Assembly (NCBI GenBank): GCA_977020255.1
Contig: CDROCS010000410.1
Span: 248,001 to 312,000 of the forward strand
Length of the DNA stretch: 64,000 nucleotides
Direction: 5' to 3'
Source of the DNA: Obrimoposthia wandeli
Lineage: Eukaryota
Part shown: positions 42,132-53,153 of the stretch, piece after piece
How positions within the stretch are numbered: the stretch's first letter is position 1
Layout: each line of letters opens with the position of its first letter
Notes under the pieces: generated by a model
Told to the model about the DNA's origin: nothing
Databases searched by the model: none
The model's input: the letters and a program-made list of their open reading frames with translations, nothing else
Made by a program: the position numbers and the translations under genes

Positions 42132-43364
42132 CTACATACTCTCTTCATGCCCGTAACAAACACCATGACATATTTGCGATAAGGCATGCTCTGCGCGGCC
42201 ATTACTGCTGAGTTGATGTGGGATACGTAAAATAACTTCCACAGAATTTTTATTACCCGCCAAAACTAAAAACAGCGCCGTGGTATTAAAATACGGCGGA
42301 ATAAAAAACACGCTCGTACAAGTGAAACCAGCAGCGCTATATTCATCCACGTTCAGGAAACCGAGATTAGAAATAATCCCAGAAGTACGGTACTGCCCTG
42401 TTTCTTGTCGTTTTAATGCCAGTTTGTCATTGAACTTTTTTAACCACGTTAGCGGTACCCAATTTAATACATTTAATGTCGGAATACCGGCAAACTGCGG
42501 CATTCTTGCATGCTCTAGATCCGCTATTTTAAGCTTGATTTGTTTAGTCCAATCAGCGGTTGTTGTGACGGGTGATACTTGCATCAATAATCCACCAGTC
42601 AAATTACCCGTAGAGACAATATCAGTATCATGCATGCGTAAATCAACTGGTAATTGGATCCGCACAGGCGAGTCAGAATAAAGATTGGCTAACTTAGCAA
42701 CACTGATACCTGCGTTGGCTAATACCTGCTTGTAACTACCAGGCAAAGTGCGGCGCTGCCAAGACGAACCAAAATCTTGCCCAAGTGGCACACCAGTCGG
42801 GGCTGCCACTGTATCGTTAACTTTATCTCCTGGTAGCGAGGTCACCGACTTAGCAAGATCAATATCACGTACAAAACTATTATCACCTTGCAATGTCAGT
42901 TGTCGTAATGCACGTAACACTTCATCAGCAAATGTTTTAGTTCCGCGTCCATCCATCACTGCATGGTGGGTTCTAAATATAATATGGTGTTTACCGTTTT
43001 CTTCTCCGAGTACCAATAAGACTTCACAACCAGTACTGGTTTTTACATCTAAAGGACGATTTAAGAATGGCGCAGCGTTATCACTCATACCATCCCAATT
43101 TAAGCCGCGGATAACTTCAAGCTGAGTTGTGATTCCAGCGTCAGACCAATGGCTAAAGCCAAGTTTACCTGATAGCCTAAATCGCGTGCCCTGCAAAGCC
43201 TCTGATGCTTTCGTAACAGCTTTTTGCCAGGCTGAGATATCAATATCACCTTCGCCTTCAAGTACCATCTGATTGACAACACAGGTCGCCGTTTCTTCGG
43301 CATTAAAATCATCACAACTAATATAAAAACGCTCTGTTGGTGAAAGTTTACGTTTAAACGTCAT
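42132..43364 (-). CDS. Stand-alone condensation-domain / CoA-dependent acyltransferase (likely start 43364, MTFKRKLSPTE)
   Basis: FRTHHAVMDGRG (HHxxxDG), PVDLR, GNLTG, ISNLG; AAGGAGG SD before 43364. Confidence 0.85.
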   Translation of the reverse strand: MTFKRKLSPTERFYISCDDFNAEETATCVVNQMVLEGEGDIDISAWQKAVTKASEALQGTRFRLSGKLGFSHWSDAGITTQLEVIRGLNWDGMSDNAAPFLNRPLDVKTSTGCEVLLVLGEENGKHHIIFRTHHAVMDGRGTKTFADEVLRALRQLTLQGDNSFVRDIDLAKSVTSLPGDKVNDTVAAPTGVPLGQDFGSSWQRRTLPGSYKQVLANAGISVAKLANLYSDSPVRIQLPVDLRMHDTDIVSTGNLTGGLLMQVSPVTTTADWTKQIKLKIADLEHARMPQFAGIPTLNVLNWVPLTWLKKFNDKLALKRQETGQYRTSGIISNLGFLNVDEYSAAGFTCTSVFFIPPYFNTTALFLVLAGNKNSVEVILRIPHQLSSNGRAEHALSQICHGVCYGHEESM

Positions 43365-43389
43365 CGTTCCTCCTTGAACTATAAGACGG

Positions 43390-46300
43390 TTATGCCGCGC
43401 TATCTGCAGCAGGATTATCAGGTAACTCGTTAATTTGACTATCACCCAACATTTGGTTGCTTCCCCTGGGTGTTTTAGACTGTAATCTGGATAGTAATAC
43501 GCCTAGAGCGAACACCATATCCTGAATCAATAAATACACAGCAGGTACTAACAGCAAGCTAACAAGTGTTGCGAATAGCACACCAAAGGCTAGAGATATA
43601 GCCATCGGAATCAAAAATTGGGCTTGTAAGCTAGTTTCACTCATGATTGGCACTAAACCAATAAATGTGGTTAATGACGTCAGAATAATGGGTCTGAATC
43701 GACGCACTCCGGCACTGGTGATCGCCGTTTCGAGTGACTCGCCTTGGCTGCGTTTTTCATTGATATAGTCAATCAAAACTAAATTGTCATTAACCACGAT
43801 ACCACTCACCGCAACCATACCAATAAAAGACCATAAGGTTACATCGACCCCAAGCAATAAATGCCCTAACAAAGAACCAACTAAGCCAAATGGGATAGCA
43901 AACATCACCAACAATGGTTGTGTGTAAGAGCTAAACAAAATCGCCATCACTAAATACATCGCGATTAACGCCAATAAATAACTACTGGTTAAAATATCAA
44001 TAAACTCAACAATGCTTTTCTGTTTACCAGCTTTCGACCACTTAACCGCCGTAGTATCGGTTAATTGCTGTAAAAAACCAGACTCCAGCTCAGCAATAAC
44101 AGCCTTAATACTATTTTTCCCCGGATCGACAAATGCAGAGACTGAAATAACGCGATTGCGTTCATAACGTTTAATATTATGATCTGCCGACTGATAACTC
44201 ACATCAGCGATAGTAAACAGTGGTACACCTTCGCCACTCGGTAATGAAATGTGCATATTCTCTAAATGCCACTGCGAGCTAGTGGCTGTTTTGGGATAGC
44301 TAACCTGCACTTTAACTTCATCTTCACCACGCGGCATACTCAGCACTTCAACACCTAAATAAGCCTGCTGAACCTGCTGCCCGAGTGCGCTTAGCGTCAG
44401 ACCCATATCACGGGCGACAGGTTTTAATGCCAACTGTACTTGCCTTGAACTACGCTGCTGCGAGTCTTGGATATCGTACACTCCTTCAAACCTTGCCATC
44501 ACTTGCTTTAACGCCTCAGCTTGTTGCGCTAAATCATCTAGGTCGCGACTCGATAATTCAATATTGATATCTGCGCTTGGCGGCGTAAGATCGGCAACAA
44601 AATTTAATTCAATACTATCTTCAATTTCACCGACGCGATCACGCCAGCGTCTAATAATGTCATTGCCAGACATAACGCGATCATTAGATACTGATAGTTC
44701 CAAATACACCCTGCCAATATGATCATCTGCAGCCGCTTGTGATTCGCGCGAATATTTACTTACCGGGGCAACAACAGAATAAACATGGGCAATAGCAGAA
44801 ATACCATTTTCATCAAGCAATTCTTGCTGTAACTGCAAGGCTTCATGTTCAATTTTTAATAATGCTAATTTAGTTTTTTGTGGGTTACTGCCCTCAGCAA
44901 ACGTCACATTGGCGTAGGCTATATCGCCTTCAATGGCCGAAAATAAAACAGTCCGTAGCCAACCACTAGAAAGCAAAGTCAAAGAGATAAAAAACAGCCC
45001 TAAAAATCCCAGTATATAACTCCAGCGCCAGCGTAATACATGATCGAGAAAAGGCTTATATTGGCGGATAACGAATGTCTCTAACGCAGCTGAAAATCGA
45101 CCTTGTATACTTTCTAATACCCCGCCAAGTATTTTAGCCTTACTCATAAACAGATTTTGGGTTACCACAGGTGACTTACCTGATTGAAATGGGGACTGAG
45201 GCTGGGATTGGGATTGAGGTTGAGAGTCATGACTTAAATGTGCAGGTAAGATGAATAACGATTCAAACAACGAAAACAACAGCGTGGTAATAACGACCAC
45301 GGGAATAACTTGCATCAATTTACCTTCAGGTCCAGGTAAAAACAGCAATGGCATAAAGGCAATAACACTGGTGATGATTGCAAAGGTGATCGGTTTAGCC
45401 ACTTTATAAGCGCCGTCAATCGCCCCTTCAACCCCTTTATTACCCGCTGCTTGCTCGGTGTAAATGCTTTCGCCGACGACAATCGCATCATCCACGACAA
45501 TACCCAGCACCAATAAAAAGGCAAACAGTGAAATAATATTAATCGAACCATCAAAAATCGGTAACAGCCAAAAAGCCCCCATGAATGAAACGGGGATGCC
45601 TAAACTGACCCAAAATGATAAACGCCAGTTTAAAAATAACAGTAAGATGACAAATAGCAGACATAATCCGCTAAACACATTACCAACCAATAAATCGATA
45701 CGACTCATGAACAATTTAGAATCATCTTGCCAAACGTACAAACTAATCCCTTCTGGCAGATAGGTTTTTGGCGTTCGCACATAGTTATTTATCGCATCAG
45801 CAACATCGATAATATTCTGGTCACCAACACGGAATACATCCAAAGATACCGCGCGTTGTCCATCAAGTTGTGCCATCGTACCTTCATCACGAAAGCCGTC
45901 GTTAATGGTCGCTATATCACTGAGTAAGATCCGCCCACCATCTTCATTCGCTTGCAGAATAATATTGGCAAAGTCATCCGCACTTTCAATTCGGCCTAAC
46001 GTTTGAATCAATATATCGCCCTGCTCTGTGGCTAAACTACCACCAGGTAAATCAAGCGCGGTGGCTTTTAATGTATTCACCACATCTTCAAACTTTAAAT
46101 TGTATTGTGCCAAACCGTCTTCAGATAAGGCGATGCTGATTTCGTAAGGTCTTGAATTTTGCAGTTCGATAACCGAAATAGCTGGTTCTTCTAATAGATC
46201 CAAGCGAATATTTTCAGCCAAACGCTTTAACGCCCACTCATCGCCAGCCCCTGAAATAATCAGTTTAGCGACGCGATATCGCTCAATCAATTCACTGACA

Positions 46301-46680
46301 ACCGGCTTAGTCACTTCATCAGGAAATGAGCTGATGCTTTCAATTCTTGATTTAACTTCATCTAACACTGCCTTGGTACTATAACCATCAGCAATATCAA
46401 TGGTGGTATAGCAAGAACCAGAACTGGCGAATGAGGTTAAATCCAGTGTCCCGGCAATATCATAAACGACGGCTTCAATGCGCGTGCAAACAACAGCTTC
46501 AACTTCTCGAGGTGCCGCACCCGGATACAATGTCGAGATCGCAATACGCTCTAATGACACACCAGGAATTAACTCTTTACGCGTTTCGGGTAAGGCTAAG
46601 CAACCAAGGGCAATAATCACCATCATGATCAAATTTGCTGCCACTCGATTATGGGCAAACCAAGTAATTAATACCTTCAT
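43390..46680 (-). CDS. RND efflux permease (AcrB/AcrD/AcrF family)
   Basis: N.VAANL.M, GIVVDDAIVVGE, VSGIVVND.LV, RRFRPIILTSLTT..GL.P; ATGA overlap with the upstream gene. Confidence 0.95.
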   Translation of the reverse strand: MKVLITWFAHNRVAANLIMMVIIALGCLALPETRKELIPGVSLERIAISTLYPGAAPREVEAVVCTRIEAVVYDIAGTLDLTSFASSGSCYTTIDIADGYSTKAVLDEVKSRIESISSFPDEVTKPVVSELIERYRVAKLIISGAGDEWALKRLAENIRLDLLEEPAISVIELQNSRPYEISIALSEDGLAQYNLKFEDVVNTLKATALDLPGGSLATEQGDILIQTLGRIESADDFANIILQANEDGGRILLSDIATINDGFRDEGTMAQLDGQRAVSLDVFRVGDQNIIDVADAINNYVRTPKTYLPEGISLYVWQDDSKLFMSRIDLLVGNVFSGLCLLFVILLLFLNWRLSFWVSLGIPVSFMGAFWLLPIFDGSINIISLFAFLLVLGIVVDDAIVVGESIYTEQAAGNKGVEGAIDGAYKVAKPITFAIITSVIAFMPLLFLPGPEGKLMQVIPVVVITTLLFSLFESLFILPAHLSHDSQPQSQSQPQSPFQSGKSPVVTQNLFMSKAKILGGVLESIQGRFSAALETFVIRQYKPFLDHVLRWRWSYILGFLGLFFISLTLLSSGWLRTVLFSAIEGDIAYANVTFAEGSNPQKTKLALLKIEHEALQLQQELLDENGISAIAHVYSVVAPVSKYSRESQAAADDHIGRVYLELSVSNDRVMSGNDIIRRWRDRVGEIEDSIELNFVADLTPPSADINIELSSRDLDDLAQQAEALKQVMARFEGVYDIQDSQQRSSRQVQLALKPVARDMGLTLSALGQQVQQAYLGVEVLSMPRGEDEVKVQVSYPKTATSSQWHLENMHISLPSGEGVPLFTIADVSYQSADHNIKRYERNRVISVSAFVDPGKNSIKAVIAELESGFLQQLTDTTAVKWSKAGKQKSIVEFIDILTSSYLLALIAMYLVMAILFSSYTQPLLVMFAIPFGLVGSLLGHLLLGVDVTLWSFIGMVAVSGIVVNDNLVLIDYINEKRSQGESLETAITSAGVRRFRPIILTSLTTFIGLVPIMSETSLQAQFLIPMAISLAFGVLFATLVSLLLVPAVYLLIQDMVFALGVLLSRLQSKTPRGSNQMLGDSQINELPDNPAADSAA

Positions 46681-49007
46681 GAGCGCACCACGTTCAACTT
46701 CATGCCATTTACCGCAACGTCAAGCGGGGTTAATATCAGTTTATCGCCAGCTTTTAAGCCACCAGTAATATACACTTGATCTTTACCTTGATGAAGGACG
46801 TCAACGAGGACAATGCTAAGTCGTTGGTCGGCGCCCAACAGCCATACTTTATTATCATTTCGCAATGCTAAACGCGGAATAATCACCACGTTGTCAAACT
46901 CACGACCAGCGATTTCGGCAGTAACAAATCGCCCAGGTTGTAAATACAAGGGTTGTTCCGGATCGTTTAATACCTCAGCAACCACATATTGTAATCGATT
47001 CTCAGCTAAGCCTCCTTCAGTCCCCGTAATAGTCCCTTGCCATTGAAAACGTGCATTATTAACACTCACCGAGAGGGTAACGCGAGGTTTTTTGATTGCA
47101 GGTTCAGCCGCTACCGTATTTTTATCATGCGTAAATGCTGAGACTTTAAAGGGCAGATCCATCAAGGTTAAATATTTATCAGCAACAGGCAGTCGCACAT
47201 GCATTGTATCTAACGCGTATATTTCGCCAATGATTTCGCCTGAGTTAACTAATTGACCTCGGCCAACATCAGCCGTTTTAACACGACCTGAAAACGGCGC
47301 TTTAATAACGGTACGTTCTAATTTTATATTGGCTAAACGTAAGTCAGCTTTAGCCGCCTTAACCCGGCTTTTCGCATCATTAATTTGCGGAATGTGGCGA
47401 GCAAAATTAGTTGCCTTGCTAGAGACTCCACGTCGAGCCACATGGGCTTTTGCTTTAGCCTCAGCTAAGTGCAGTAACGCACCATCTACGGCCTGCTGCT
47501 TTTTAATCACTTCAAGTTGGTATGCTTCATCGTCCATCGATAACAACACATCGCCAGCATTAAAATAGCCACCAGCAGTAAAGCTATCAGCAACAGATTT
47601 AACGTTTGCAGTCACTTCAGAATTAAGGCTAATTTGCGTTTTAGCGGCGACGATACCACGGCTGAAAATAGGGATTATCGCGTTATCAAAAGCCACATCC
47701 ATATAGCGAACGGATGGGAAACGATTAACTTCTGGATTGATTTGGCTCTGTGGTCGAATGACAGATAACAGGGTCATACAAATCACAGTAAATGCCATAA
47801 TCGAAAGTGGGATTGATACTTTTTTATGGCGAATAAATAATAACTGCCCTTGTCGCCAATATGGTAATAACGTGTCTTTAGCTTGCAGTACACCTTTTTC
47901 TATTTTAGGTAATAGATACTGCTTTAACTTGCTGGGTTTACGCTGCTTTTTTGACTTAGTTTTTAATTTAGCCTCTAGCTTAACAACTGCAATTTCTTCT
48001 GGAACCAGTAAGTCACCTTGTAACAAATGCTGTTTCCAACACTGCATTACGGCTTCCGTTATAATGATATCGTCGGCTATATACGGGTGTAATTTCAACC
48101 CCAAAGACAGCTGTTCATGCCACAGTAAAATACCTGTCGAAACTGGATAGTTTTTAGTACCAATGCCACAACAAACCCACATGTCATCTTGGTTCATTGG
48201 TGGATTATTATCATCCTGAAGTGGCCAATTGCCTAAAAAGCTAAATGAACCAGCATAAAATTGGCGCTCACTGACATATTGGTAAATACGACGTACGCCA
48301 TTCTCACCAATAATTTTACCTATATGAGCCTGCCACCAAAGCTGCCAATGACTTTTGGATTTGATCTGTTGCTTCACTTGCAACTGGATATCGCGCGGTG
48401 CAATAGTATTGTTAAGTATGACATTGATACCAGAGGAGCAATTACCCGTTTCAGGGACATTGGGTAACGCCCCACGTAAGTTAACCGGATATAGCCAGTA
48501 GTAGTCTTGTTGGGATGCAAGAAGTTGCTCGGCGACAGCTCTGTTTAACGCCCAGAATAGATAAATATTCAGTGCGACTCTGTGCTTTTTAGCTAATTTT
48601 TTAACCTCGAGTGTTTCAGCTTTACTGAAGTACGTATTAACAATGGGGGCGTCATTACTGTATTGAGTCGTGTTATTGATTGCCGCATGATCGGGGAACG
48701 TAGCTTTCCAACGAATGGTTTTAGCCACATTAGACTTGCCACCAGCAAACAGCATTTTAACTTGCTGCCAATGAGACGGTGCAGTTTTGTCTGCGCTTTT
48801 AGGTAAGTTCACACAAGGGTAATCATGCTCACGCAAGATAGTGGTTAGCCCACCTAATCCATCCATTTGACTGTGCGAAAATTCAAACCAATTAATGTCA
48901 TCCGTGGTTTTATTTAGCAAGCCAACATTCATTCGGTCACCGATCCCAAACGCTTTACGTGCCTGAAACCACATTGCTATATAATCTTTATTCTGGCTAC
49001 TACTCAT
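46677..49007 (-). CDS. Fusion: N-terminal HxxxDG acyltransferase/condensation-like domain (about 330 aa), Lys-rich linker, TM anchor and RND periplasmic adaptor (MFP)
   Basis: FSHSQMDGLGG, PVNLRG, GNCSS, SFLG.W; then KVSIPLSIMAFTVICMTLL TM, G.V..V...F..GG.F..GD.L, RT.IKAPF.GRV, PGRFV.AEI.G. Confidence 0.88.
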   Translation of the reverse strand: MSSSQNKDYIAMWFQARKAFGIGDRMNVGLLNKTTDDINWFEFSHSQMDGLGGLTTILREHDYPCVNLPKSADKTAPSHWQQVKMLFAGGKSNVAKTIRWKATFPDHAAINNTTQYSNDAPIVNTYFSKAETLEVKKLAKKHRVALNIYLFWALNRAVAEQLLASQQDYYWLYPVNLRGALPNVPETGNCSSGINVILNNTIAPRDIQLQVKQQIKSKSHWQLWWQAHIGKIIGENGVRRIYQYVSERQFYAGSFSFLGNWPLQDDNNPPMNQDDMWVCCGIGTKNYPVSTGILLWHEQLSLGLKLHPYIADDIIITEAVMQCWKQHLLQGDLLVPEEIAVVKLEAKLKTKSKKQRKPSKLKQYLLPKIEKGVLQAKDTLLPYWRQGQLLFIRHKKVSIPLSIMAFTVICMTLLSVIRPQSQINPEVNRFPSVRYMDVAFDNAIIPIFSRGIVAAKTQISLNSEVTANVKSVADSFTAGGYFNAGDVLLSMDDEAYQLEVIKKQQAVDGALLHLAEAKAKAHVARRGVSSKATNFARHIPQINDAKSRVKAAKADLRLANIKLERTVIKAPFSGRVKTADVGRGQLVNSGEIIGEIYALDTMHVRLPVADKYLTLMDLPFKVSAFTHDKNTVAAEPAIKKPRVTLSVSVNNARFQWQGTITGTEGGLAENRLQYVVAEVLNDPEQPLYLQPGRFVTAEIAGREFDNVVIIPRLALRNDNKVWLLGADQRLSIVLVDVLHQGKDQVYITGGLKAGDKLILTPLDVAVNGMKLNVVRS

Positions 49008-49120
49008 CGGTTAGCTTCCTTGTTAACCAAACTGAATGCCTCGAAAAAATCGAAACTTTAAAATTTAAACCTTTAGCTTTAACCTTTAGCCTTTAACCTC
49101 GTCCTTTACAACCTAGCCCT

Positions 49121-50278
49121 TTACAACCTGGCAGGTTCTAAATACAAGGGATATGTTTTGTCAAAATTAGCGCGTGGATCATCGTGATAACTAGCAATGA
49201 AATGTTTGCTATGCAGTACTTTAGAACGATATTGTTCGAGAATATGCTGACGGGTATCTATCGAGGGTAATCCGCATACTAACGCCTGATAGTTTTGCGC
49301 TAAACAATCATTATAAATATGCTCTAATAACCGTGAAAATAACTTTTCATCATCATTAATGACTAACAAGCTATGCAGCGACACATAACTGAGTTTATCT
49401 CCGGATTTCGGTAGCATCATGCCGCCGAACAATGTCGAGTAAGCATTATTAAGTAAGCGCACCACAGCCATCAATTTACTGTAAGCGACAAAACGCGTTT
49501 GTTTAAAGCTGCTTTGATCCCAAATACCAGCCATTGCGACAAGTTGGTTACCTTCGAACATCAAGTAATAATTACTGATGACGAGTCCTCGGTAATACTC
49601 ATCGCCATTTAATAATTTAATAAAATCATAATGCGGATAAAACTGTTTAGTCTTAGCTTGCTGCTCAAAGAAGACTTGCATCAATTCAATATCATTATGA
49701 TCCGCTTTACGGATGTTAAACTTACTTTCTTGATTTGAATGTGGCAAAGAACGAGGCCTACTTATAAGAGATTTAGCTATACGAGGCCTAGTTATACGAG
49801 GTCTAGTTAAATACAACATATGCGTTGTCATCTCACCAAAATCATAATACGTAGGCGTGATACTACGTCCGCTGCCGATTGAATTTAAAGAAGCATTGTT
49901 ATCACTCAGGATCACGGTCTGCATCCAATCACGACCCATCGCTTGGCGATAACATTTCAAAAGATTAAAGAGAGTCCGACCACTTTTGAAGTCAGGGTGG
50001 ATCCGTAAGTCATTACCATAACGTACTTGCTGACGCTCACCATTCACATAAACATCACGATGACCAATACTAAAGATTGCGGCAACACGTTCGCTTTCAC
50101 GCTCAATCGCAACCCAAACATCCGGTATCTGAGTCACTACTTTCGTGGCCATAAAAAAATCAGGCATGCGTTCAAAATTGATTGTAATTGCCCCGGCCTG
50201 AGGGGTTGCTGCAATTAATGCGATCAATTCATCAGAATCATTTGTTTGTGCTGGCCTTGTATAGAATCGGCTTGCCAT
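49121..50278 (-). CDS. Tandem GNAT-fold acyltransferase-like protein (NMT/FemAB-like architecture)
   Basis: R.A...D...L, YGNDLRIHPDFKSG, second GNAT-like half (IRKA...D, L.AMAGIWDQ..FKQ). Confidence 0.7.
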   Translation of the reverse strand: MASRFYTRPAQTNDSDELIALIAATPQAGAITINFERMPDFFMATKVVTQIPDVWVAIERESERVAAIFSIGHRDVYVNGERQQVRYGNDLRIHPDFKSGRTLFNLLKCYRQAMGRDWMQTVILSDNNASLNSIGSGRSITPTYYDFGEMTTHMLYLTRPRITRPRIAKSLISRPRSLPHSNQESKFNIRKADHNDIELMQVFFEQQAKTKQFYPHYDFIKLLNGDEYYRGLVISNYYLMFEGNQLVAMAGIWDQSSFKQTRFVAYSKLMAVVRLLNNAYSTLFGGMMLPKSGDKLSYVSLHSLLVINDDEKLFSRLLEHIYNDCLAQNYQALVCGLPSIDTRQHILEQYRSKVLHSKHFIASYHDDPRANFDKTYPLYLEPARL

Positions 50279-50352: not shown

Positions 50353-52005
50353 CTATGCGGCAATCGCTTGAAGAAAGATATCCGGCATATCAACATCCCA
50401 AAGTACTAAAGGCTCAATTTTTATATTACCAACAACCATGCCGCGCGCTTCACAACGTGAATAATACAAATCACGCGCGTTCTGACTACAACATACTTTT
50501 AACGCATCCAGCTGACCAAGATCTCTTGCTAATTGGTAATGGAAGCAAGCCTGCAATTCAGCTTCGGCATTGGCAGCAACCTGCTGCATTTCCAGTTCGC
50601 TAATATGGCTATTCGGTTCACACAGTAAAAGATAAAATGGTTTTTCATGCGAGCTATTAGCCGGTACAGCAAAAACCGTGATAGCTGTTAATCGTGAGTC
50701 TTCCTCGGCGGTTTTCATCACTTCAAGCGCGATCTCTGGACTCATTTTTTCACCAACAAGATCAATACCATCCAAGCGACCTAAAAATTCAAAACAAGGA
50801 CAATCTTGCAGGAAACCACTGACACGTAATTTATCTTTCATCGCATATCGCAGTAAGCCACTGCCTGTAGTTAATACCGGTCTTACAAGCTGATCTTGTT
50901 TGAGTTTCCAAGCGGGTAATACCGCGTCAGTCTCAAGGTCAATAAATTCATAAAAATGACTGCATATGGCTAATGGATATTGCCCTTGGAAAGGAATAGT
51001 GACAACTCCCTCAGTAGCCCATAATCCCTTGCCTTGAAACTCCCCTTGTGGCAGTAAATCTTTCAATTTATTCGCCCACGTAGTAGATGACGATGTATCC
51101 CATGCGCTAACCAGCACCAATCGAGGCCAAATTTGTTGTAACAACTCAGCAGAAATACCGCCCTTCCATTGCAATAGCAACTCAGCAACACGTTGTGATT
51201 TAGGGCATTTCAATCCAGGTAATGCCGCAGCACGCTTACCCCACTTGCCTGTCGCCAATACCGATACCAGCTCTAATTTATGTTTAATAATATTATCAAA
51301 TAAGGTCAGTGCAAAAGTAGGACTCCACACCGACAGGAAACTTAACGACTTATCCGCCAGTAAATAACATAACGTGGCAAATTGAGAGTCTTCTGATGTA
51401 TCAGCTAAAGACACACCTTCAGGTACCGAACTGGTCACCCCCATAAATATCCTTTTCCACCAAGGCAGTAACTTCAAGTCGTCATTCACCGCACCAGATA
51501 TCGTCCGTCTTAATTCTGTCGGCACCCAAGACAATGACCAATAGTGCGTCCCTTTAAGCATGCCTGGATTATCTTTATACATATCCACCATCCAAGGCGA
51601 AATTGCAGCATCAAGTTCATTTAAAAATGACTGCGTATAAGGGATCCATTTTATTTTAGAGGTTGAGCCACTTGTCGGCTGAAATCGTTCATTCTCTTCA
51701 ATACTCAACTCTTGACTACTACCCGACCTGGCTTTTTCTATTTGTATTGCCCAATCGTCATATTCAGTGATAGGTACCTTACGAATAAACTCTTCATAAA
51801 ATAGCGAAGTCGATAGATTATATTTCTTACCTGATACACTTGGCGCGATCACTTTAAGCAATGAACTTAATTTTTCACGTTGCACTGCTTGCGGGTGCGC
51901 CAAGGCTTTACAAAATTGTTTGTATCCATACAAGCTCAATTTATTTGCTGCTTGATGAGTGAATTTATGTGCGAGCTTACGGGTGATGCTATTGATTAAC
52001 GCCAT
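50353..52005 (-). CDS. GH3 family acyl-acid amido synthetase
   Basis: VPITEYDD, FQPTSGST...KWIPYT, KGLWATEG..TIP, HFYEF, L.TGSGL.RY.M.D, F.GR......GEK. Confidence 0.9.
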   Translation of the reverse strand: MALINSITRKLAHKFTHQAANKLSLYGYKQFCKALAHPQAVQREKLSSLLKVIAPSVSGKKYNLSTSLFYEEFIRKVPITEYDDWAIQIEKARSGSSQELSIEENERFQPTSGSTSKIKWIPYTQSFLNELDAAISPWMVDMYKDNPGMLKGTHYWSLSWVPTELRRTISGAVNDDLKLLPWWKRIFMGVTSSVPEGVSLADTSEDSQFATLCYLLADKSLSFLSVWSPTFALTLFDNIIKHKLELVSVLATGKWGKRAAALPGLKCPKSQRVAELLLQWKGGISAELLQQIWPRLVLVSAWDTSSSTTWANKLKDLLPQGEFQGKGLWATEGVVTIPFQGQYPLAICSHFYEFIDLETDAVLPAWKLKQDQLVRPVLTTGSGLLRYAMKDKLRVSGFLQDCPCFEFLGRLDGIDLVGEKMSPEIALEVMKTAEEDSRLTAITVFAVPANSSHEKPFYLLLCEPNSHISELEMQQVAANAEAELQACFHYQLARDLGQLDALKVCCSQNARDLYYSRCEARGMVVGNIKIEPLVLWDVDMPDIFLQAIAA

Positions 52006-52014
52006 GCCATCCCC

Positions 52015-52806
52015 CTACTTAACTAAACGACGAGTTAAACTAATAAGTCCTAAATCCCAATTGATATTGTTTTTTTGCAATGTCTTGCTTAGTGATTTTC
52101 GTGCAAAATAGCTAAACATTGAGGCGTTAATTTGACCAATACAAGGTAGTTCCTTACCCTCACGCCAATTCGGATTACGGTCTTCAAAGAATCCAATTTT
52201 AGGTACAGTTCGTTTCAACTCTGAGGTTATCTCAGCCACTTCTCCACGTAGCTTTTGGTAATCGCCACCAAAATCTAAGATTTGCTGCTGCGCGTCGAAA
52301 TAACTTGGATACAGGTGTTCGCAATATTGATCGACAACTGATGATAATTCATCAAACTTGCCTTGGTGATGTGGATAATGTTTTGGGAAGTTATTGGCGA
52401 GTAATAAGTAAGTTTTATAACCTTTGGAAATAAGTAGCCAAAATAACGGCGTGAGTGGATCGCGTAGTTTTTCCTTTAATAACACTTTAACAAAACAGAT
52501 CATCGCCTTATTGGTTCCCCAATACTGGCGCTCTAAAATAGTATCACCACTAAAGATACCTTTAACCTCTCTGCCTTTCAGGTTGAAGCGTAACGTTTTT
52601 AACGTACTAAAACCGACAATGCGCTTTGATTTACTTTCGCGGATCAAAATCAAACCGTCTTTTTCAGACAAATCATCTATGAATGTTGAAAAATCCGCAT
52701 TGTGATAGTACTGAATAAAGAGCGTATGCATTTCCTTTACCTGCTGGATAGAAATGCGATCTAATGTAATGTAATCTGCTGATATCTTCTGTTTTGTCGT
52801 TTCCAT
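52015..52806 (-). CDS. GNAT-like protein of the GH3-associated family (likely start 52806, METTKQ)
   Basis: F..DL.EK, RIVGFST, FSGDTI....YWG, WLLISKGYKTY..L.N.F..HYP. Confidence 0.7.
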   Translation of the reverse strand: METTKQKISADYITLDRISIQQVKEMHTLFIQYYHNADFSTFIDDLSEKDGLILIRESKSKRIVGFSTLKTLRFNLKGREVKGIFSGDTILERQYWGTNKAMICFVKVLLKEKLRDPLTPLFWLLISKGYKTYLLLANNFPKHYPHHQGKFDELSSVVDQYCEHLYPSYFDAQQQILDFGGDYQKLRGEVAEITSELKRTVPKIGFFEDRNPNWREGKELPCIGQINASMFSYFARKSLSKTLQKNNINWDLGLISLTRRLVK

Positions 52807-53137
52807 TTGTGACCCAATCCTTGGCAAATGTGTAGGTGTAAGAATAAAAGTAAATGTACCCTCATTCAATCTCAAGCCATCCTTAGCTTGCTGTCTTTTA
52901 GATCATCCGGTGTGAAGGATTAAATCTGAAAGTAAAATGAATGTATCACTAAAATATGCTCGCTTGAAGACAATCAAAATACCTTAAAGAAGCATGATAA
53001 CCGGACATAGATTAGCGATAAAAGCTAGATTGACGAGTGGGAACAGTTCAAATTTAATCAAAGTCCCCATTAAACAGATAAATATGCCATAACTCTTATT
53101 TTACAAACTTCAGCTACGACAATTATATCTGTCTAGA

Positions 53138-53153
53138 AGTGACCGTTGTCACA
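53138..53153. promoter_or_regulatory. CRP-like site upstream of the GH3 operon
   Basis: AGTGA-CCGTTG-TCACA, one mismatch to TGTGA-N6-TCACA. Confidence 0.5.

Follow-up and report, generated by a model that had tools for sequence, protein, structure and literature searches.

An HxxxDG condensation-fold domain fused to an RND pump adaptor in Moritella suggests a link between a GH3-containing operon and export

Can an enzyme be carried by the adaptor of a resistance-nodulation-division (RND) pump, and if so, what would it do there? The question is raised by one open reading frame (ORF) in a 64,000-nt stretch of DNA (contig CDROCS010000410.1 of assembly GCA_977020255.1, positions 248,001 to 312,000, deposited under Obrimoposthia wandeli; hereafter the window, with positions counted from its first letter), in which an earlier note, made from the letters alone, had seen an acyltransferase/condensation domain fused to an RND membrane-fusion protein (MFP). 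To our knowledge, RND adaptors have been regarded as purely periplasmic connectors. ORF calling gave a single frame of 776 codons running from an ATG at 49007 to a stop codon at 46677-46679, with a Shine-Dalgarno sequence, AAGGAAG, 8-14 nt 5' of the ATG. The earlier note had the length and extent of this ORF right and did not give its strand, which is minus; the plus strand across the same span is closed and full of stops. The gene and its parts are as follows.

46677..49007, minus strand: whole gene, 776 aa, consisting of a presumed HxxxDG acyltransferase domain, a linker, a transmembrane (TM) helix and an RND membrane-fusion protein (ORF calling, Pfam, TIGR01730; full-length in 16 Moritella proteins)
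48006..49007, minus strand: N-domain, aa 1-334, predicted to be cytoplasmic; a short branch of the condensation/PapA5/WS-DGAT superfamily
48858..48875, minus strand: HSQMDG (H45, D49, G50; aa 45-50), the presumed catalytic His motif, from the family alignment and in register with the LgrA condensation (C) domain
48471..48488, minus strand: PVNLRG (P174-G179; aa 174-179) in the C-lobe, with R178 invariant in the alignment; pairs with PVDLR in the family of a 437-aa protein of the same operon
47817..48005, minus strand: Lys/Arg-rich variable linker, aa 335-397 (63 aa), defined by K+R excess, substitution rates and length variation
47754..47816, minus strand: single TM helix, aa 398-418, N-in by hydropathy and the positive-inside rule; in other genera the N-terminal TM helix of the separate MFP lines up with it
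46677..47753, minus strand: predicted periplasmic membrane-fusion (adaptor) part, aa 419-776 plus stop codon (TIGR01730, 2e-36; Pfam HlyD_3)

Both motifs reported in the earlier note lie in the N-terminal domain, and the order of parts that it described, a Lys-rich linker, a TM helix and then a complete MFP, was borne out. Residues 456-773 score 125.5 bits for TIGR01730 (RND_mfp; cut-off 94.9), and the protein has the inner-membrane TM anchor and the cognate RND permease, encoded alongside, that are expected of an MFP. An arrangement of the adaptor into hairpin, lipoyl, beta-barrel and membrane-proximal parts is putative, with support from the HlyD_3 and TIGR models only; AlphaFold2 prediction of the full-length fusion from an alignment of 16 Moritella sequences only was poor (predicted local distance difference test score, pLDDT, 36). 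Hydropathy of the fusion protein exceeds 1.6 at only one peak, residues 398-418, with 7 K+R in the 30 residues before this helix versus 2 in the 30 residues after it. By the positive-inside rule, therefore, the first 397 residues would be cytoplasmic and the adaptor part periplasmic, in agreement with the topology that the earlier note had proposed for the enzyme. The linker contains 17 K+R versus 5 D+E and would be a basic, disordered segment.

Is the N-domain an enzyme? In an alignment of 140 family members with a mean column identity of ~19%, the only invariant columns are H45 and R178, and D49, G50, W100, W171, P174, N176, N189, W221, G253, G259, W261, and P288 are conserved in at least 90% of sequences; because these positions include the core of HSQMDG and PVNLRG, the two motifs are not chance occurrences. 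A family profile alignment sets the His motif directly against HHxxxDG in the condensation domain of LgrA, the form in the family being (S/A)HxxxDG, with the second (catalytic) His kept and the first absent. AlphaFold2 prediction of the N-domain with the 140-sequence alignment gave a two-lobe, chloramphenicol acetyltransferase (CAT)-like fold (pLDDT 93.6; predicted template-modelling score, pTM, 0.92). Foldseek searches of the PDB with this model returned condensation, cyclisation, and epimerisation domains of nonribosomal peptide synthetases, PapA5, and TRI3 (E 1e-10 to 1e-7), and a shape search of the ESM Atlas returned PapA5, WS/DGAT, and alcohol-acetyltransferase clusters of 420-470 aa at template-modelling scores of 0.72-0.78 over ~305 residues. 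Predicted structure and His-Asp-Gly motif thus agree on the CAT/condensation fold on which the earlier claim depended. Its label "condensation domain" is right as to superfamily fold and too specific otherwise, since the domain is non-canonical: it is smaller by ~100 aa, and its His is residue 45 of 334 instead of lying at ~125-160 of a 400-470-aa domain. Against Swiss-Prot models, residues 28-38 of the N-domain pair with residues 110-140 of WS/DGAT and Rv2305, so the ~100 absent residues belong to the N-lobe, ahead of the His.

No Pfam or NCBIfam model recognises the N-domain (the best, PapA_C, scored 16.1 bits with a cut-off of 30), and its standalone relatives have no match or a sub-threshold match in Pfam. 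An exhaustive phmmer search of 1.84 billion representatives nevertheless placed it in a family of at least 463 clusters at 50% identity. The best 150 of these 463 clusters are almost all free-standing proteins of 310-360 aa, and the HxxxDG motif lies at residue 31-77 in nearly all standalone members. The short family has conserved motifs of its own (W100, WxxPVNxRG, HWxxW, and GxFSxLGxW), and AlphaFold DB and Atlas label it merely "uncharacterised" or "hypothetical". By predicted fold and motif, then, the N-domain is a member of the condensation/CAT superfamily outside any described family, forming a compact new branch, and presumably an acyltransferase. It could instead be a non-catalytic relic of the condensation fold that serves the pump as a cytoplasmic substrate-binding or regulatory module, in the manner of type I secretion system (T1SS) adaptors. 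The reduced N-lobe, with its early His, and the lack of Pfam membership speak for such a relic, as does a review according to which adaptors of the ABC, MFS, and T1SS kinds depend on their cytoplasmic parts to recognise substrate (PMC8277102). An invariant His with Asp and Gly at least 90% conserved would be surprising in a relic at so low a mean column identity, however, and most family members are free-standing, some in contexts that contain no pump; we regard this explanation as improbable.

Is the fusion real? A search of 5.8 billion proteins found 16 full-length homologues at 69-99% identity and 100% coverage. Those with a named source are all from Moritella (M. dasanensis, M. marina, M. 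viscosa, JT01, sp. 24, and PE36), and the fused set includes complete genomes with contigs of 4.6-4.7 Mb, independent isolates, metagenome-assembled genomes, and metagenomes. When residues 1-340 were searched against long proteins alone, the same Moritella set was recovered and nothing further. The reading frames of the fusion are intact in the related loci L003 and L004. The earlier note had proposed looking in sister strains for a stop codon in the linker; the fusion is kept in all 16 proteins, and an error of sequencing or assembly, or a stop-loss confined to one strain, has a negligible probability given these independent sources and long contigs. That note had also found the architecture unfamiliar, and indeed no other MFP with it was found among the proteins searched: among the best 150 of the 463 clusters, the Moritella cluster alone is fused to an MFP.

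Across the Moritella alignment the N-domain, TM helix, and adaptor are highly conserved and the linker is hypervariable in length and sequence. Pairwise ratios of nonsynonymous to synonymous substitution rates (dN/dS) between the window and two Moritella genomes were 0.05-0.08 for the N-domain, 0.06-0.11 for the TM helix plus MFP, and 0.29-0.48 for the linker, at dS values of 0.6-1.5. These values indicate purifying selection, with the enzyme part at least as constrained as the adaptor part. In a phylogenetic tree, the fused domains of Moritella group together as a single clade (support 100/100), which is nested among unfused domains of Hahellaceae, Pleionea, and Exilibacterium in a larger, well-supported clade. 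On these sequence comparisons, it is near-certain that the gene fusion is genuine and fixed in the genus Moritella.

Where did the fusion come from? The fusion gene is one of six window genes, all on the minus strand with short or overlapping junctions, that form an operon. The other five, in order of transcription, are as follows.

52015..52875, minus strand: 286-aa unannotated protein, possibly GNAT-like, first gene of the operon and conserved at the operon head (Atlas features 0.97-0.98 to GNAT-named clusters, a lead only)
50353..52005, minus strand: GH3-family adenylating amido synthetase, 550 aa (Pfam GH3 1e-40, GH3_M 2e-15, GH3_C 4e-6)
49121..50278, minus strand: 385-aa protein, likely to be a two-domain GNAT; of all neighbours of the HxxxDG gene it is the most constant (similarity of 0.97-0.98 to GNAT clusters by Atlas features)
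43390..46680, minus strand: RND permease, 1096 aa, AcrB/MexB-like (Pfam ACR_tran 8e-148; PDB relatives of the MtrD/MexB/AcrB type)
42132..43445, minus strand: second, full-length HHxxxDG (HHAVMDG) condensation-like protein, 437 aa (weak Pfam Condensation match; C-lobe homology to the N-domain)

To ask how this operon is composed elsewhere, related loci were collected by scanning one genome per species with an 11-sequence subset of the family alignment as query; the scan used a single peptide pattern and is biased to Gammaproteobacteria and Bdellovibrionota that bear WxxPVNxRG. Genes for GH3, the 385-aa protein, the HxxxDG protein, and an RND permease occur together in 35 of the 52 related loci, accompanied by the 286-aa protein in 33 of the 35 and by the 437-aa protein in 14 (14/52 loci). 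The order is GNAT-like protein, GH3, double GNAT, HxxxDG protein, MFP, RND permease, and sometimes a second HHxxxDG protein, making six to seven genes. Hosts comprise Moritella, Hahellaceae, Pleionea, Exilibacterium, Oleispira, Bermanella, Thalassolituus, Saccharospirillaceae, Oleiphilaceae, Moraxellaceae, and Alcanivorax/Alloalcanivorax; outside Moritella, the operon is thus present in at least 10 other marine gammaproteobacterial groups, many of them marine hydrocarbon degraders.

Everywhere outside Moritella, ORF calling showed the HxxxDG protein, of 315-353 aa, to have its own gene. The next gene usually encodes 385-400 aa with a TM helix at the start, usually overlaps the HxxxDG gene by 4-17 nt, and where tested with Pfam encodes an HlyD-family MFP; tblastn did not find MFPs outside Moritella, where ORF calling combined with Pfam found them. 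The same HxxxDG-then-MFP layout is seen in the closest standalone relative (56% identity, on a metagenome contig); the metagenome contigs of distant family members are mostly too short for gene context. Because the two genes are separate and usually overlapping elsewhere, the Moritella protein is the product of a single fusion of two adjacent and often overlapping genes that were probably translationally coupled. Covalent tethering cannot be required, as every relative outside Moritella has two separate genes. The earlier note had foreseen that close relatives might carry separate genes and that the fusion might then be a strain-specific stop-loss: the first is true of all relatives outside Moritella, and the second is not, the gene being fused throughout the genus. 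In Pleionea sediminis and Exilibacterium tricleocarpae, which belong to the unfused lineages closest to Moritella, the separate MFPs are longer (548 and 579 aa; L008:11049-12695 and L015:11098-12837), and their TM helix is preceded by ~120-170 aa of cytoplasmic tail that is basic and of low complexity.

The same family has joined a pump a second time. A 1371-aa AcrB-family permease carries an HxxxDG domain (HRYYDG) at its C-terminus, residues 1051-1361, and is encoded identically on three contigs from metagenome assemblies of three samples (L055:10001-14116, L056, and L057), in an operon of genes for a 272-aa protein, GH3, a 363-aa protein, an MFP, and the RND::HxxxDG fusion. AraC-family and LysR-family regulators flank this operon. 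The C-terminus of a 12-TM RND permease of the AcrB type is cytoplasmic, so this enzyme would also sit at the cytoplasmic face of the pump. In the tree its domain falls on a long branch in a separate well-supported clade, with Moraxellaceae; the fusions to MFP and to RND permease are independent. In Moraxellaceae and Oleiphilaceae loci, the HxxxDG gene is a separate ORF after the RND gene.

The Moritella fusion could nonetheless be neutral. A stop codon lost between overlapping genes in the ancestor of Moritella would then have joined an enzyme and an adaptor that still act just as separate proteins do, and the fusion would reflect co-expression only, with no docking or channelling. Within the searches described, Moritella alone has the enzyme-MFP fusion; the genes of its relatives overlap or abut, so that one small change could fuse them; the linker is of low complexity and poorly constrained; the RND fusion likewise joins genes that are adjacent in related loci (L030 and L047); and tethering is dispensable in all other genera. 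The Moritella fusion has nevertheless been kept across a dS of ~1 without reversion in 16 lineages, both independent fusions use the topologically permitted cytoplasmic end of a pump subunit, and the basic tails of the Pleionea and Exilibacterium MFPs hint at a role for the cytoplasmic side of the adaptor. We judge a neutral origin, the main alternative, unlikely, though far from negligible. A functional linkage of enzyme to pump is supported by the conserved operon together with the independent RND permease fusion.

What might the enzyme contribute? Other contexts of the HxxxDG family were informative. At one locus from an uncultured gammaproteobacterium (L033:6566-8902), a 778-aa MMPL-family (HAE3-like) transporter lies inside the operon between GH3 and the 385-aa homologue, replacing the MFP plus AcrB-type pair. 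Other fusions, with the HxxxDG domain C-terminal, are to an MprF-type LPG_synthase_TM (flippase-like) domain, a GDSL lipase, and a short-chain dehydrogenase (P0072, P0107, and P0128). Some members are free-standing in contexts without any pump, and some adjoin fatty-acid desaturase or hydroxylase genes. Thalassolituus and Oceanobacter have two to three tandem short HxxxDG paralogues with no GH3 or RND gene nearby (L020:10004-12084; L022, L024, L026, and L027), near genes for a fatty-acid desaturase, a CHASE/MASE1 hybrid histidine kinase, an M48 peptidase, and a TonB-dependent receptor. A distant member ends a cluster (L060:570-6951) of KAS III, a 91-aa protein that is possibly a carrier protein, an AMP-binding ligase, an NAD-dependent epimerase/reductase, and a cytochrome P450, which is another lipid or natural-product context with no pump. 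Taken together, the other fusions and neighbours of the family suggest membrane-lipid chemistry.

Within the window operon, the fusion gene stop codon overlaps the RND permease start as ATGA. The 437-aa protein is marginally similar to the N-domain by BLASTP (E 0.006), and profile-profile comparison with hhalign found the two families homologous over the C-lobe, aligning PVNxRG with PVDxR (probability 97%, E 1e-10). Some members of the 385-aa family match Acetyltransf_1 at 8e-5, and the protein is probably a two-domain GNAT; the 286-aa protein matched nothing in Pfam, NCBIfam or PDB sequence searches, and language-model similarity to GNATs is a lead only. Homologues align from residues 27-30 of the 437-aa protein (in tblastn) and from residues 21-28 of the 286-aa protein, which has a TTG start. 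The likelier starts are therefore M28 at 43364, which removes a 56-nt overlap of the 437-aa gene with the RND gene, and M24 at 52806.

Several smaller features of the operon deserve record. Most of the 113 nt that separate the 385-aa gene from the fusion gene are short tandem repeats (window 49056-49129) with periods of 7, 13-14, and 15 and units that include GGTTAAAG and GCTAAAGG (coding strand). The RND permease has a low-complexity insert, SQPQSQSQPQSP, at aa 486-497 (45190-45225), just past the end of the AcrB-type first-half match (~aa 480); it is presumably in the cytoplasmic loop between TM6 and TM7 and could be a docking site for cytoplasmic enzymes or merely a tolerated insertion. A scan for promoters and terminators at the operon performed no better than on shuffled sequences, and no Pho box was seen by eye there. 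A CRP-like palindrome, TGTGAcaacggTCACT, matches 9/10 consensus positions at 53138-53153, ~330 nt upstream of the likely start of the first gene, and may be due to chance.

We propose the following scheme. The GH3 enzyme would adenylate a fatty or other carboxylic acid and amidate an amino acid with it, as OlsH does for N-acyl-ornithine; the HxxxDG enzyme or enzymes and the GNATs would acylate the resulting amide further on the inner side of the cytoplasmic membrane; and the RND/MFP pump would take up the amphiphilic product and deliver it to the outer membrane or the medium. With the Moritella fusion, one enzyme copy would come with every adaptor protomer to the cytoplasmic face of the pump, and the late acylation step and export would thereby come together in one place. 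The sequence data thus suggest that Moritella cells produce an acylated amino-acid lipid and export it from a single site of the inner membrane.

Other assignments of the operon were considered. A siderophore operon, suggested by an IucB-like GNAT, was dropped, as the operon has no gene for a hydroxylase, for a synthetase of the NRPS-independent siderophore (NIS) type or for a receptor. Alternatively, the enzyme might acylate an incoming toxin, as chloramphenicol acetyltransferase does, for the pump to expel; the CAT-superfamily fold and the resemblance of the permease to multidrug RND pumps would fit such a detoxification module. Its constant linkage with an ATP-dependent GH3 amide synthetase and two GNAT-like proteins points to synthesis instead, and the other fusions and neighbours of the family are lipid enzymes, which makes detoxification a very improbable function.

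A number of facts weigh against the acyl-amino-acid lipid scheme. The fusion is limited to one genus, the other operon carriers being unfused and tethering hence dispensable, and both fusions join genes that were already adjacent, the kind of fusion most easily acquired by accident. The linker evolves almost freely, the N-domain has a reduced N-lobe and scores below every Pfam gathering cut-off, and the short HxxxDG family and the 286-aa and 385-aa proteins are without known product, substrate or activity. The operon contains no outer-membrane factor gene, and none of its six genes encodes an alpha/beta-hydrolase O-acyltransferase of the OlsI type. Finally, the likeness of the window GH3 protein to OlsH is one of family membership.

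With these points counted, we consider a GH3-dependent acyl-amino-acid lipid pathway, with an acyltransferase working at the cytoplasmic face of the pump, to be the probable explanation, by a modest measure. Its parts differ in strength. The structural and evolutionary part, which draws directly on the architecture, fold, motif conservation, sequence-rule topology, genus-wide conservation, purifying selection, operon conservation, and two pump-subunit fusions, is near-certain; the lipid chemistry is roughly evenly balanced between right and wrong. We infer catalysis, the substrate class, the order of steps, and channelling, and the same applies to the synthesis-coupled export or channelling into the pump that the earlier note had proposed. 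A bolder version can be put forward only tentatively: that this is the first MFP known with a biosynthetic enzyme; that its pump-borne acyltransferase, present in up to six copies per pump in Moritella and three in the permease-fusion lineage if the usual adaptor:permease ratio of 6:3 holds, finishes a GH3-made acyl-amino-acid lipid or surfactant and hands the product to the pump; that the operon is an unrecognised lipid or biosurfactant pathway of Moritella and of oil degraders (Alcanivorax, Thalassolituus, and Oleispira); and that the short HxxxDG proteins are a new acyltransferase family.

A search of the literature, including by way of Alcanivorax lipid-export mutants, found no description of the operon, of the short HxxxDG family or of an enzyme-bearing MFP. 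Neither the components nor the notion that synthesis may be coupled to export is new; what is new, as variants of these, is the architecture, together with the enzyme family and the pathway. A joining of biosynthesis to RND export has so far been argued mainly for mycobacterial MmpL systems. The enzyme-bearing adaptor and the independent permease fusion are natural "Rosetta-stone" evidence that the two can be physically joined in Gram-negative bacteria as well, and the comparison of fused with split versions offers a ready experimental handle. The analysis also flags a GH3-based operon, conserved yet uncharacterised, in marine hydrocarbon degraders of ecological importance, for which surface-active lipids matter in oil uptake, and an unannotated acyltransferase family of at least 463 clusters. 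If the bolder version is true, cold- and deep-sea Moritella and the main marine oil-degrading genera would have a lipid or biosurfactant pathway in common.

How does this system compare with known ones? OlsH of Singulisphaera acidiphila (AGA25978.1), a GH3-like enzyme, makes N-acyl-ornithine from free fatty acid, ornithine, and ATP, with no need for CoA or acyl carrier protein; a second, unrelated enzyme then O-acylates N-acyl-ornithine to ornithine lipid, and the authors anticipate different N-acyl amino acids as products of further bacterial GH3 homologues (PMC12493201). The window operon is alike in encoding a GH3-family adenylating amide synthetase beside a putative acyltransferase. It differs in that OlsI is an alpha/beta-hydrolase, whereas the candidates for the second enzyme here are condensation-fold and GNAT-like proteins, and in that the OlsH/OlsI operon has no pump, whereas this one has an RND/MFP pump. 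WS/DGAT, PapA5, fungal AATase/TRI3, and free-standing C domains such as AzeD have the same two-lobe fold with the His motif between the lobes; the N-domain is ~100 aa shorter before this motif and has conserved motifs of its own.

Enzyme domains and cytoplasmic extensions have been described in other pump subunits. QsdH of Pseudoalteromonas byunsanensis is a GDSL lactonase/hydrolase fused to an RND permease and predicted to be periplasmic (PMC3466314). It too is an enzyme domain built into an RND pump subunit of a marine gammaproteobacterium, but it is degradative, belongs to the permease, and would lie on the periplasmic side, whereas the Moritella domain would be a cytoplasmic transferase borne by the adaptor. 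In ABC, MFS, and T1SS systems, according to a review, the TM-anchored adaptors have sizeable, poorly known cytoplasmic parts, and HlyD, EmrA, and MacA resemble the Moritella protein in having an N-terminal TM anchor and a cytoplasmic segment important for substrate recognition (PMC8277102). Those segments are short and non-enzymatic, whereas the RND-type adaptor of Moritella has, ahead of its TM helix, a 334-aa folded, putatively enzymatic domain and a linker of 63 aa.

A further parallel is in mycobacteria, where condensation-fold PapA acyltransferases and polyketide synthases work with MmpL RND exporters, coupling synthesis to export (PMC1238737, PMC3318749, PMC4183827). Compared with PapA5/PpsE-MmpL7, which serves phthiocerol dimycocerosate (PDIM), and PapA/Chp-MmpL8/10, the window encodes an AcrB-like permease with an MFP, for a tripartite-style pump in a Gram-negative host, rather than an MmpL-type transporter without an MFP, and only at L033 does an MMPL transporter take the place of this pair. 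Coupling in the window is covalent, by gene fusion, and involves no polyketide synthase; the acyl-amino-acid chemistry suggested by GH3 would likewise set it apart, as would the shorter and separate family to which its presumed acyltransferase belongs.

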